DNA of 64,000 nt from Bugula neritina. Its lineage: Eukaryota; Animalia; Bryozoa. A model generated the notes under the pieces. The model did not search any database. It was not told where the DNA came from and saw only the letters and a program-made list of their open reading frames with translations. Where the stretch lies: the NCBI GenBank assembly GCA_964035545.1, contig OZ037766.1, positions 4,206,722 through 4,270,721 on the forward strand, written 5' to 3'. The stretch's first letter is position 1. Every line of letters starts with the position of its first letter. Position numbers and translations under genes: made by a program. Shown one piece after another: positions 15,643-42,722 of the stretch.

Positions 15643-18600
15643 ATGCATTTACTTTGGGTATGTCCCTGCTTGTTGATGGTGAGTATAAATTGTATATTAG
15701 CTTTTTTATTTTCACATGATTGCTTCCATTAGATGCTGTAAAAAACTCACTTATGTGAAAAGTTCCTGTGAAAACCTAGGATTTAGCTGGGTTAAAACTC
15801 TTATATGCTGACAACATGATTAATTAATGATCTTTAATAAGGCACAAATGGAATTATTATCAGATGCTCTTTCTGCCATCACCAATGACCTGGACTCAAA
15901 CCAATGACCTGTTTCACACCAGGCCTGCGCTCTAACCACTAGACCAAGGCTTTTCCCTTATATAACATGTTAAATATAATTATTATATATACAATTGCAC
16001 ACCACACTAACACATTGATCATCTGTAAAATCTCCAAGGGTAGTTGAAACTTATTTACCTGTTTCTCAACTCTTTTAGGTGATGGCATCTTTTTGCTTGG
16101 CTGGCAGCAACCTAGTAGAACCAGAGTTGTCAAAGTCTGATATCTTATACACAACTGGCAACAGAGACCGGCTTCGAATAAAACGAAGTACAGCCAATGA
16201 AATGCTTGAGCAGCAACAGGTATAAAATCAAAGTGTAAATCTATATTTTAGTTGAGTCATTTTGTTGGCTATATATATATACATCCTGAATGGTTCAAGT
16301 TAAACAGGTTATGTGTTCACTTGCTGAAAACTTGAAATTTAACATGTTCTGAAAGCTGGATTTAAAACAAAAAACAAATGCAGCACTGAATAAAACTACC
16401 GGTTTTTGGTAGTCATCATTGCATTACTTGGATATTACAATATTGTTTGTTTATTCAAGTAAATTATTAGAAATGTAATTACATGTGCAACTTCAGCAAG
16501 CATGTCGTAATTTGCAGGTAAGGGAAATCTCATGAATAATAATTAATACAATATTACTAACCTATCATATCAAAGTGCTGCCTTTCTCAAAATAGCAGTT
16601 TCCAATATTTATCAACATTTCCTCAAAATTTAATATTTATAGTTGTAGCACTTGTTAGGGAAGCTGTCCGCATTTTTTTTATATAAGCAAGCTTCTTTTT
16701 AGTGCAATAAGCCAACATGGCTGAAGAAAGTTATGATAAGTTAGATGCTTTCTCAACGTATGCTTTTCTTGCAGCTGTACTCATACATACAGACCGTCTC
16801 ACAAGGGTCATCACTCATCTCCCTATATCTCTATGCCTACCAGAACCCAACAGATAGTACAGATTCCGGAAAATTCTGTGACTACAACAGTGTAGGTGAT
16901 TACTGTGACATCTCTTTTGACATTTGTCTGAGTCACAAAGGCTACAGGTTGGTTCACAGTATGCTCTGAATTGTAATACATCCATGTTATAGCAAAGCAA
17001 GTGTCTAACTCTGCGGTATGCTTTTGTTGAAAAAATATTCAGGTTTTTGTAAATAGCACAGTTAAGATAACTGTTTCAACAATCAACCAATAGTAATTTG
17101 GCAAATTACTTTTTTAGAAAAACTAGCCATGCAGTTGGTGGAGTGTGTAGAATTATGATAAATATGGTTTATTCCTAATACATATATAATTATATTGCTA
17201 GCTATATATTGAGTTGGATAGTGCAGAGAGAGTGAAAACACTATGTACGTCAAACATTGACTATTTAGCTAGAAGCTGTTCATAGCTTTTTCTCTAAAAG
17301 CTTGTAAAGCTATTTAAATACAACACAGAAATATACTGCAACGCCCGATTCGTGGAAAAAAACTTCAAGTTTCTAATCTGCTACGAAAACAATTTTTTAA
17401 AGAACTGAGTAAATATTTTTATTATATAAATCTACAAACAATTTGAGGTTGTTCTGTAATTAGGATTGTGATTCGTTGAATTTAGTAAATTGGAGTTATT
17501 GTGTTTGTAGTGATTGCTCAATTCTAAGGCTAGTGACTGGAATAGTCAGCAGTGAAGGAGCTGGGCCTAAGCTCTTTGGGTCCATAATTGCTGGAGTAGA
17601 CAACCCTATACAAATTAACAGCACTACATGGAAGGTATTAATGAGAGTATATAATATATATAACTGCTGATAACACTACTTCCTGTGATAACCAGTCATG
17701 CGGCAGACATTCCTTTTGGGTATATTCACTGTACAGTGTACATAGTTGAAACACAAATAATCAAAAGTACTCAATGATTTGATGCGCTATTCCTTGCATC
17801 AATTAAATTTTTGAATTACTTAAATATTGGTTGAATCGTTGATATGTAGGATTGTCAACTTATTTGCAAAAAAATATTTTTTGCCAAAGTTGAATTCAGA
17901 TTCTATTTTAAGTAATAAAACTTTTATTCTTAATGTTTACAACAATAGCTGCACTGTTTTAACTTCAATGCAAGATTTTGTTAAATTTTGCACCCACCAT
18001 ATTAAAATTTGAATGTATGAAATGTATAAAATATTTCAGGGTTTAAGCATACTAATCAGGGTGTTTGATGACGATGGTGTGCGTGTGGACCAAGGAGTGG
18101 CTGTATCAGACAAAGAGCTAATAGACCAGTTCTTTTATGTTGTATCAGAACAAGGGGATACTTCTGATTTAAGACTTACTGGATCTTTAAAACCTCACTC
18201 TAGGTAGGTAACTTTTTATTCCTAAACTGCTAACAAAAGATCAACTAGTGAACACTTTTGACAAGATCTTTAATTGTTATGTAATAATATATTATTTGAT
18301 ATGGTACAAATAAAATGGATTGATCCTATTTTGATCATGTTACATATTTTTATTACGCTGGCATAACTATAGTTACACAGAAAAAATGTCTCATTCAATC
18401 TAATTAGTTAAAAATTTACGTAAACATAGATTCAAACAGAAAAAAGTATTAAGTGCAGTACTGGAGAAATTCAAACAAGCCAGTATTCTAGTTAAGAAAT
18501 GCAGCGCAGAAGTTATGTTCTCTCAAGAATTTCACCCCCCACCCCAAATATCAAAAAATTCATCAAGAAAATTAGATAACTTTGGTCAACATACTTTTGC

Positions 18601-42600: not shown

Positions 42601-42722
42601 TATTATGTTTCTTTTAGGAGTATAAACCATCTCTTGGAGTTGTTTCCTCTATTGTTGGAGTAATTATAATAGTCTGTATATTAGCTGGAGTTATGATTAT
42701 CCGAAAGAAGTCCATTAACTAA
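15643..42722 (+). CDS. Giant Delta/Jagged-related mucin-like type I membrane protein (~3052 aa, 43 exons): signal peptide, propeptide, 10 MNNL/C2-like domains, 2 degenerate DSL, ~6 ShKT-like modules, Thr/Pro-rich linkers, EGF, TM, short tail
   Basis: Exons 15643-15678, 16079-16219, 16775-16947, 17511-17634, 18040-18203, 18638-18762, 19231-20581, 21019-21145, 22025-22185, 22410-22758, 23032-23195, 23854-24001, 24419-24582, 24900-25147, 25850-25937, 26483-26591, 27094-27254, 27501-27625, 27932-28295, 28456-28582, 28868-29040, 29320-30051, 30626-30755, 30900-31711, 31991-32111, 32507-32667, 33064-33174, 33705-33878, 34519-34627, 34794-34945, 35792-35951, 36319-36452, 36660-36846, 37264-37367, 37513-37652, 38376-38526, 38898-39021, 39776-39936, 40333-40616, 41080-41294, 41857-41951, 42156-42330, 42618-42722. 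All are GT-AG and phase-compatible and sum to 9159 nt (a multiple of 3). The N-terminus MHLLWVCPCLLMVMASFCLA looks like a signal peptide; TM LGVVSSIVGVIIIVCILAGVMII; tail RKKSIN*. Confidence 0.8.
15741..15957 (-). mobile_element. Degenerate copy of the tRNA-derived SINE (intron 1 of the giant gene)
   Basis: Reverse complement GGGAAAAGCCTTGGTCTAGTGGTTAGAGCGCAGGCC..GGTCATTGGTTTGAGTCC..CATTGGTGATGGCAGAAAGAGCATC is colinear with the 10085-10311 copy. Confidence 0.65.
16775..19241 (+). other. First MNNL/C2 + DSL module of the giant protein
   Basis: SLISLYLYAYQNP..GKFCD..CDISFDICLSH..DCS..VTGIV..DNPIQI..WKGLSILIRVFDDD..KELIDQF..LLLRINSKCATNYYGEDCAVYCDP..YQCLPDGTRLCNSG aligns by eye with Delta/Jagged (FELKL..NxxG..CC..CxxFFRVCL..C..NPI.FPF..WP.TFSLIIEA..ERLI..CDEHYYGEGCSVFC..FTC..GEKVCNPG). 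Confidence 0.85.
25721..25803 (+). repeat. (ACACACGCAC)n microsatellite
   Basis: Seen directly, about 8 units. Confidence 0.95.
33978..34185 (+). mobile_element. tRNA-Thr(AGT)-derived SINE, copy 2
   Basis: GCAGCTGTGGTCTAGGGGTTAGAGTGTTTGCCTAGTAAACATGAGGCCATGGGTTCGAGCCCGAACAAAGGCCATTGGTGATGTTAGGAAGAGCATCC..TCTCACAGGGATAGTGGCTATAAACTTG is highly similar to the reverse complement of 10085-10311. Confidence 0.85.
34979..35490 (+). repeat. Perfect (AC)n microsatellite, ~256 units
   Basis: Uninterrupted AC dinucleotide run in the intron 34946-35791. Confidence 0.99.
36256..36331 (+). repeat. 39-bp-period tandem duplication of a splice acceptor
   Basis: TAATAATAATGTCCTATTACGTAG|GTTCAAATGTCCA occurs twice (AG at 36278-79 and 36317-18). 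Confidence 0.95.
41591..41690 (-). mobile_element. tRNA-like (Gln-like 5' half) repeat or pseudo-tRNA; partial second copy at 49505-49553 (+)
   Basis: Reverse complement GTTTACCCAGTGGTTCCCGTGGTGTAATGGTTAGCACACTTGCTTGCAAGCCGGAGGTCTCGGGTTTGATTCTCAATGGGGGCA. The anticodon stem and T-loop are imperfect, and the 5' flank is shared with the second copy. Confidence 0.65.

Follow-up and report, generated by a model that had tools for sequence, protein, structure and literature searches.

Does this locus of Bugula neritina hold one gene whose product strings together ten copies of a C2 domain that Notch ligands carry once, and what might such a protein do? Within the window (the whole stretch of DNA analysed, 64,000 nucleotides), a gene model built by hand has 43 exons between 15643 and 42722 on the forward strand, with GT-AG borders at 42 of 42 introns. 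Its 9159-nt coding sequence translates into 3052 aa with zero internal stops, which bears out the original prediction of a single spliceable ORF of ~3050 aa.

One gene, with probable processing at both ends

From N to C terminus the protein is laid out as a signal peptide, a furin site, a long region of C2, DSL-like, ShK-like and Thr-rich segments, an EGF, a second furin site, a TM helix and a 6-aa tail. In all there are ten C2 modules of ~160 aa (M1 to M10), two DSL-like domains, six ShK-like modules, one EGF and two furin sites.

15643..42722, + strand: whole gene, type-I membrane precursor (model; 4 introns confirmed by RNA contigs)
15643..16108, + strand: signal peptide, aa 1 to ~22, exons 1-2 (hydrophobic N-terminus; cleavage site estimated)
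16175..16186, + strand: furin site RIKR closing a short propeptide (motif; RLKR in orthologue L055)
42256..42267, + strand: juxtamembrane furin site RVKR, then Asp (motif; R-x-x-R-D in orthologue L054 and in the paralogue)
42633..42722, + strand: TM helix, 6-aa tail and stop (model; short tail conserved)

RNA contigs from run X1 splice exactly at the predicted introns 27625/27932, 28295/28456, 29040/29320 and 31711/31991, and in run X2 introns are covered unspliced. A pseudogene is ruled out by the open frame, the spliced RNA and the excess of synonymous over replacement changes (16 versus 6 among 40 listed variants). That the model fuses at least two adjacent genes is hardly credible: spliced introns were seen at only 4 of 42 positions, in an RNA search that spanned 6 kb, but the frame is open throughout with matching phases, any internal signal peptide, TM or stop is absent, and the domain order is identical in other species. 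Moreover, the RNA joins DSL-like domain 2 to M5 and M5 to M6, and a single exon bridges M6 and M7.

Because the tether bears a conserved furin-type site, the ectodomain is probably shed from the cell. The furin site of the orthologue is of the minimal R-x-x-R form only.

The ten C2 modules

16787..18665, + strand: C2 module M1, complete acidic cluster (profile and motif reading)
20421..22437, + strand: C2 module M2 (profile and motif reading)
23038..24927, + strand: C2 module M3 (profile and motif reading)
25063..27528, + strand: C2 module M4, extra intron in its first part (model and profile)
28138..29347, + strand: C2 module M5 (profile; 2 introns seen spliced in RNA)
29888..31082, + strand: C2 module M6 (profile)
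31542..33091, + strand: C2 module M7, one additional Cys at each end (profile; 1 intron seen spliced)
33724..35819, + strand: C2 module M8, degenerate acidic site (D,R,H,S,K) (motif reading)
35928..37540, + strand: C2 module M9, intron positions differ (model and profile)
37640..40360, + strand: C2 module M10 (profile; Pfam MNNL E 0.13)

The ten starts originally proposed agree with these within 3 nt, except for M1 (given as ~16800), which was off by 13 nt. Each module is spread over 3-5 exons with mostly similar intron phases (2, 0, 2). Of the modules in the window, profiles made only from those of the paralogue recover the first part of all ten (as 11 exon pieces), the second part of 7 and the third part of 9; the same profiles gave zero matches in 20 shuffles of the window's 664 ORFs, ruling out a chance or low-complexity artefact. 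Pairwise identity among the modules is only 20-42%, and this, together with 1:1 orthologues, rules out recent tandem duplication.

Are these modules truly of the Notch-ligand type? Direct matches of single exons are weak (Pfam E 0.13, PDB E 0.02), and a Pfam scan of the gene's single exons returned no C2 or MNNL match above cut-off. Exon by exon, Pfam recognised the DSL-like domains (E 4.4e-7 and 1.9e-4) and one ShK module; for MNNL (PF07657) single exons reached E 0.13 at best, below cut-off. Profiles built part by part reach further: the first-part profile finds proteins whose domains match Pfam MNNL at E 7e-12 and 1e-19, and the second- and third-part profiles align, in order, to those same MNNL domains (hhalign E 1.3e-7 and 5.8e-7). 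At E 1.5e-10 the combined profile aligns with Jagged1 C2 from end to end and sets its WD motif on the Jagged1 Ca2+ loop. Taken together, these matches span the full domain with its parts in order. Taken singly, the second-part profile met chance matches only in the PDB, and a feature search with the third part gave weak matches only. As no fetched locus carried an entire module within one ORF, natural homologues were folded as proxies; models of two of them are C2 sandwiches (Z 12-14), a fold that we infer by extension for the window's own modules. At the level of sequence, the modules are shown to be divergent Notch-ligand (MNNL) C2 domains, and the derivation first proposed is upheld by part-wise profiles and homologue models alike.

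DSL-like domains, mucin-like stalk and the Notch question

18663..19241, + strand: DSL-like domain 1, six Cys, Notch-binding loop deleted (PF01414 E 4.4e-7; alignment)
27526..27954, + strand: DSL-like domain 2, Trp in place of the fifth Cys (Pfam E 1.9e-4; RNA splice into next exon)
19284..19421, + strand: ShK-like Cys module 1 (Cys pattern; no Pfam match)
19983..20105, + strand: ShK-like Cys module 2 (Cys pattern; no Pfam match)
29774..29881, + strand: ShK module 3, six Cys (PF01549 21.4 bits, cut-off 20.9)
31329..31457, + strand: ShK-like Cys module 4 (Cys pattern; no Pfam match)
40580..41883, + strand: ShK-like modules 5 and 6 (module 5 PF01549 E 0.0085; Cys pattern)
41902..42201, + strand: single EGF-like domain (EGF_DL_JAG E 0.006 on the second exon of the domain)
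19422..40540, + strand: ten Thr/Pro/Ser tracts between modules, ~713 aa in total (model; Thr is 24% of the protein)

The Thr/Pro tracts and ShKT-like modules noted earlier between the C2 modules are indeed present, although PF01549 places only one of the six ShK-like modules above its cut-off, with one below and four without a match. Long Pro/Thr/Ser tracts, a TM and a short tail are what a membrane-tethered mucin has, and frame, TM and tracts together support a single membrane-tethered, mucin-like ORF. Judging from composition, the linkers would be densely O-glycosylated. Among the exons scanned with Pfam there was no SEA or VWD-type cleavage domain; a furin site stands in its stead.

The DSL-like domains sit directly after M1 and after M4, and these two C2-DSL units are kept in the orthologues and the paralogue. 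The genome also has a canonical Delta elsewhere, and the DSL exon of the window gene shares its phases with that of a Delta-like gene (L008) on its contig. As the best reading, the poly-C2 gene would have arisen by duplication from a Delta-like head, that is, a C2-DSL exon cassette.

The product is not a canonical Notch ligand. It has the signal peptide and single TM of one, and M1 with DSL-like domain 1 fits the expected N-terminal MNNL-DSL order, but this pair is followed by nine further C2 modules and another DSL-like domain. Instead of 5-16 EGFs straight after the DSL there is a single EGF adjoining the TM, and the 6-aa tail, minimal in the orthologue too, leaves no endocytosis-capable intracellular domain. 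The Notch-binding face of Jagged1 lies in the R201/R203/D205/F207 region of its DSL (PMC3415683); in comparison with the genome's own Delta, the loop of Jagged1 residues F199, R201, R203, D205 and F207 is substituted and shortened in both DSL-like domains. Lost Notch-binding residues, missing DOS-EGFs and the missing signalling tail rule this candidate out. There is likewise but a slight chance that the protein modulates the Notch pathway, as decoy or co-ligand, through its M1 and M4 heads: the conservation of both units and the six Cys and YYG of DSL-like domain 1 speak for it, whereas the lost loops, a Cys lacking from DSL-like domain 2, the absent DOS-EGFs, the 6-aa tail and the separate canonical Delta speak against it. 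The Notch decoy of the original prediction is unsupported because both DSL-like domains are without the Notch-binding loop, DOS-EGFs are absent and the tail is 6 aa long.

Conservation and relatives

Other species keep the module order, one degenerate module, the TM, the short tail and the flanking genes (synteny). A module tree, built with FastTree from per-exon alignments set side by side, shows that orthology across species holds module by module. Protein matches reveal arrays of 2-3 MNNL-type C2 domains in other invertebrates; none of the 82 representative matches is a long annotated relative, and the two long ones (P0011 and P0047) were rejected as unrelated repeats. Homologue searches with two exon regions gave no match, and one with P0045 returned itself only, in both cases under length limits that keep full-length relatives outside the scope of the search. 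No poly-MNNL protein is described in the literature searched (subscription journals lay outside its coverage), in keeping with the early claim that no protein of this architecture had been described.

A probable acidic metal site and what it may do

In nine of the ten modules the motifs CD..CD and D-x-D and a fifth acidic residue are all preserved (M9 scored by eye); these include the CD-CD motif and loop-3 D-x-D that mark metal-binding C2 domains of the tardigrade TC2P/AMNP type. M8 is without most of the acidic residues and is degenerate in orthologues too. In other species, 31 of 42 modules contain the four-Asp core by pattern count. The modules of the window protein have net charges of -5 to -15. 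The cluster seen in these sequences reads as that of Ca2+-dependent C2 domains and of TC2P/AMNP. In TC2P the Asp cluster holds three Ca2+ (PMC7784755); the C2 domains of Jagged1 and Delta bind liposomes, Jagged1 through D72/D140 and Ca2+ (PMC3888931, PMC8490980). Jagged1 C2 takes one Ca2+ by D72 and D140, whereas the window's modules have five acidic residues there, a fuller site.

Because nine copies retain the full acidic metal-binding site, a Ca2+-dependent surface binder, rather than a signal, is the most likely role. We suggest, at a probability of about 0.5, a Ca2+-dependent protein, released or still tethered, that binds anionic surfaces multivalently in mucus or cuticle; multivalent Ca2+-dependent binding as such, proposed from the outset, is likely. 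A Delta-like C2-DSL head, duplicated and spaced by Thr-rich linkers, would yield a type-I membrane precursor, whose linkers would be O-glycosylated in the secretory pathway and which furin would cleave at the propeptide and juxtamembrane sites, freeing a long beaded ectodomain or leaving it loosely held at the apical surface. Each bead would be a C2 sandwich closed by a disulfide, with apical loops that take Ca2+ from seawater; through this Ca2+ it would dock on phospholipid or glycolipid that is anionic, or on surfaces that are otherwise polyanionic. Nine such sites would provide avidity, and M8 would offer a Ca2+-independent site. In mucus or cuticle the protein would be a Ca2+-dependent coat, trap or cross-linker rather than an activator of Notch, and what it binds might be microbes, particles of food, vesicles or membranes of the animal itself.

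Counting against the Ca2+ reading, the related AMNP has a lower affinity for Ca2+ than for Zn2+ and Mn2+ (PMC9145152). Also against it, domains so strongly acidic may repel anionic lipids and favour cations or mineral.

The net negative modules, the inferred shedding and conservation across a lineage that we take to be calcifying bryozoans would also suit a skeletal or cuticular matrix protein, with acidic Ca2+ beads on a glycosylated scaffold organising or inhibiting calcium carbonate deposition; this is unlikely, as the acids cluster in C2 metal loops and not in Asp-rich low-complexity tracts. The match of the acidic site to TC2P/AMNP adds a further rival, a multi-site haem-free Mn2+-dependent peroxidase protecting or cross-linking mucus or cuticle. 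The CD-CD and loop-3 D-x-D motifs coincide with the AMNP metal site (PMC9145152), family profiles match 7DBT (E 0.003 and 4e-4) and a homologue model reaches Z 12.8. We nevertheless regard this as decidedly unlikely, since AMNP is a weak enzyme (1/20 of catalase) linked to the Golgi, and since TC2P uses the identical residues as ordinary ligands for Ca2+. The Ca2+ of seawater, far above its Mn2+, also counts against a peroxidase. Very little probability attaches to a purely structural mucin whose beads polymerise by protein-protein contacts, with metal merely stabilising: Ca2+ does stabilise Jagged1 C2 (PMC3888931), and modules are conserved one by one as if each had its own partner, but the near-invariant five-acid cluster exceeds the needs of stability and neither VWD nor another known polymerisation domain was found.

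Ten diverged copies uncoupled from Notch binding, nine with the full cluster and one conserved without it, form a natural panel for testing C2 ligands. They would also supply candidate proteins of mucus, adhesion or skeleton for the bryozoans, a fouling phylum in which few have been characterised. To our knowledge, few C2 domains are extracellular, and what lipid binding contributes to Notch ligands is an open question.

Comparison with known systems

With Delta/Serrate/Jagged ligands (MNNL PF07657, DSL PF01414 and EGFs) the window protein shares a disulfide-bonded extracellular C2, the C2-DSL junction, signal peptide, EGF and single TM; they have one C2, whereas it has ten, with mucin spacers and ShK-like modules. 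Ligand head domains in tandem also occur in cnidarian proteins with repeated DSL domains (Gazave 2009, PMC2770060) and in Actinia tenebrosa XP_031571273 (P0045), which has three C2-like starts, five DSL matches and a similar WDxD loop; there, however, DSL is the main repeat unit, and P0045 has at most three C2 and neither Thr-rich stalk nor TM. Tandem MNNL domains outside canonical ligands are likewise seen in the uncharacterised P0064 (an invertebrate MNNL-MNNL-fibrinogen protein) and P0067 (an MNNL-DSL-MNNL fragment), in two copies and with different partner domains.

Ferlins, extended synaptotagmins and Munc13 also combine multiple C2 domains with an Asp cluster for Ca2+-dependent membrane binding, but are cytosolic, without disulfides or mucin spacers, and only distantly alike in fold (Z 9-12, homologue model). 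Membrane-tethered and ShKT-bearing mucins (Toxocara MUC proteins, for example) share Thr/Pro tracts, ShKT-like modules and a cleavable tether; no C2 arrays are described in them, and no SEA or VWD domain was found in the window protein.

By sequence, TC2P (PDB 7DF2) and AMNP/g12777 (PDB 7DBT) emerge as relatives of the window's C2 family, with a secretory-pathway C2 sandwich, a first-metal-loop disulfide, an Asp cluster and, in AMNP, the CD-CD motif. They differ as soluble single-domain proteins with three disulfides, expanded by gene duplication and without DSL, ShK or TM; in the multi-domain window protein only the CD-CD disulfide is matched. Both were described as tardigrade-specific, with no link to Notch drawn there; their kinship would tie two stress proteins held to be particular to one phylum to the Notch-ligand family. 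We tentatively consider a broad secreted Ca2+/Mn2+-binding C2 family, comprising Notch-ligand C2, TC2P and AMNP, from which this lineage may have built a novel class of shed mucins with 10 and 17 C2 copies, for multivalent membrane or mineral recognition or as multi-site peroxidases; if so, the poly-C2 mucins would display the signalling-independent activity of the ligand tip.

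Gene structure and expression

Built by reading the sequence, the poly-C2 gene model has 43 exons, with GT-AG at 42/42 introns and compatible phases, and a CDS of 9159 nt encoding 3052 aa whose sole stop is terminal. The single spliceable ORF of ~3050 aa put forward in the original prediction is thus open throughout, and its ten module starts agree with ours. Profiles built solely from modules of the gene's paralogue (see below) retrieve the poly-C2 module exons in the window, with zero matches in shuffled controls. Features of the window and of the predicted protein are as follows:

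Window 900-14600, plus: multi-exon gene; no Pfam match on the exons tested; L055 has a conserved copy of its final exon upstream of the orthologue
Window 15643-42722, plus: poly-C2 gene
aa 45-48: N-terminal furin site
aa 2994-2997: second furin site, before the TM
aa 3024-3046: TM, followed by a tail of six residues
Window 34979-35491: perfect (AC)256 microsatellite inside a poly-C2 intron
Window 36242-36331: 39-nt duplication, leaving the acceptor of exon 32 present twice
Window 44400-47600, minus: adjoining mucin-like gene with a 15/75-nt Thr/Ala-rich repeat exon; similar Thr-rich minus-strand ORF at the equivalent position in orthologue L054
Window ~51700-59800, plus: pyruvate dehydrogenase kinase-like gene (weak HATPase_c matches), syntenic in L054

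The first part of the protein comprises, in order, a signal peptide, furin site, C2 module M1, DSL-like domain DSL1, ShK-like 1, a Thr tract, ShK-like 2, M2, M3, M4 and DSL2; the remainder runs through M5, ShK3, M6, ShK-like 4, M7, M8, M9, M10, ShK-like 5 and 6, one EGF, furin site, TM and tail. Ten Thr/Pro/Ser tracts sum to ~713 aa. M2-M10 carry a Cys at the start and at the end (M1 is the exception), with one more at each end in M7, which suggests that each bead may be closed by a disulfide.

Over 27090-33080, contigs from RNA run X1 lie mostly on poly-C2 exons and skip four predicted introns exactly at their predicted ends; run X2 reads through the introns. The junctions seen, four of 42, connect DSL2-M5 and M5-M6, while exon 24 bridges M6 and M7, and we consider it hardly credible that the model fuses neighbouring genes. 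The 40 listed variants comprise 18 intronic, 16 synonymous and 6 replacement changes. We conclude that the gene is real, expressed and conserved.

Origin of the modules

Homology searches used single exons as queries, one at a time, and direct matches were weak: E 0.13 to Pfam MNNL, 0.02 to DLL4 residues 5-40, and 2.3 between the third exon part of the module and the Munc13 C2B loop. A first-part profile matched 82 proteins, of which ~59 were exon fragments of close relatives and two spurious repeats. Several of the remaining, weaker matches bear Pfam MNNL (E 7e-12 in P0064 and 1e-19 in P0067, both unnamed invertebrate proteins), and the second and third parts align onto the MNNL domains of these proteins in the correct order. 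A profile combining natural MNNL domains with poly-C2 exon pieces spans the entire Jagged1 C2 (E 1.5e-10). Two natural homologues were modelled (pLDDT 78 and 74), and both models resemble Notch-ligand C2 domains (Foldseek top match 5UK5, E 5e-8; Z 12.1-12.5 against Drosophila Delta). Furthermore, M1 and M4 pass directly into DSL-like domains, whose exon phases are those of the DSL exon in the Delta-like gene at C2:5.56 Mb. Together, exon profiles, homologue models and DSL junctions and phases make the predicted MNNL origin well supported, and we infer a C2 fold for the gene's own modules.

Age of the array

The gene's paralogue lies on the same contig (~9.29-9.34 Mb, minus) and has 17 modules along with additional DSL-like domains; a TM and a furin site are present here too. 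Its acidic cluster is missing from several modules, and its final two, near-identical copies, are a recent duplicate. The poly-C2 gene is also present on metagenome contigs of other species, where modules cluster by position (FastTree support 0.97-1.0 for M2, M3, M5 and M7-M10), with 40-59% identity between orthologues versus 20-42% among modules. L055 retains the propeptide furin site, M1 and DSL1; L054 retains M10, both ShK-like modules, EGF, R-x-x-R-D site, TM and short tail; flanking genes are kept in both. The array is therefore old, with every bead maintained individually. In another orthologue (L010:446-1393), two further furin sites, absent from the window's gene, lie between ShK-like modules 1 and 2 and would release the M1-DSL1 head.

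Notch-ligand function

The loop holding Jagged1 R201, R203, D205 and F207 (PMC3415683) is substituted and shortened in both DSL-like domains compared with the genome's canonical Delta, and in DSL2 the fifth Cys is Trp. No DOS-type EGFs follow the DSL-like domains, and the tail has only six residues. Judged from sequence, the protein is probably not a working Notch ligand, and we also regard a Notch modulator as improbable. The canonical Delta gene (C3 736-746 kb, minus) has MNNL, DSL, EGFs, TM and tail; a non-canonical Delta-like gene (L008:4013-10000, C2 5.564 Mb), with one C2, a short DSL, many EGFs and a long tail, is a possible sister of the poly-C2 genes.

Putative metal site and proposed function

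In nine of the ten modules the first loop still carries C-D..C-D, the W/F/L of the fifth strand is followed by D-x-D, and a further acid precedes V/I-D/E-x-F. This pattern resembles the clusters of several Asp in the C2 domains of synaptotagmin and Munc13. In M8 the site reads D,R,H,S,K and is likewise degenerate in its orthologues (L027_m3, L032_m2). Jagged1 C2 coordinates one Ca2+ through D72 together with D140, and it attaches to liposomes (PMC3888931); liposome binding is also reported for Drosophila Delta (PMC8490980).

We propose, with a probability of about 0.5, that the secretory precursor would be O-glycosylated on its Thr tracts and cleaved by furin at both ends, so that a long ectodomain of beads would be either released or kept loosely at the surface. 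Ca2+ would occupy nine putative apical pockets, bridging to anionic lipid or other polyanions, and the array would confer avidity. That the protein instead belongs to the skeletal matrix is unlikely, and a purely structural polymer is very improbable.

Comparison with known systems

The acidic pattern also matches the CD-CD motif and D161/D163 of tardigrade AMNP (7DBT), which bind Zn2+ or Mn2+ and accompany Mn2+-dependent peroxidase activity (PMC9145152), and the three-Ca2+ site of TC2P (7DF2; PMC7784755). Family profiles match AMNP at E 0.003 and 4e-4, the first-part profile aligning motif on motif. The Actinia-domain model (P0045) gives Z 14.0 to TC2P and 12.8 to AMNP, at or above Delta; a second homologue model (P0064) scores lower (8.7 and 9.4). 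Both proteins were described as tardigrade-specific, with no mention of Notch in the AMNP paper (PMC9145152) or in the parts consulted of the TC2P paper (PMC7784755); on these profiles and models they seem to belong to the Notch-ligand C2 family as divergent relatives. An AMNP-like peroxidase is a quite unlikely reading of the poly-C2 protein.

The MNNL-type C2 domain itself is already known. The original prediction knew of no protein with this architecture; the open literature searched likewise yielded no account of a ten-copy C2 mucin, but the searches reached long proteins poorly. Proteins with 2-3 MNNL-type copies exist (P0045, P0064, P0067). P0064 fuses two MNNL domains to a fibrinogen C domain, which suggests that this C2 may be employed in recognition proteins. 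Tandem ligand-head domains are already on record in cnidarian repeated-DSL genes (PMC2770060), which share this feature with the poly-C2 gene.
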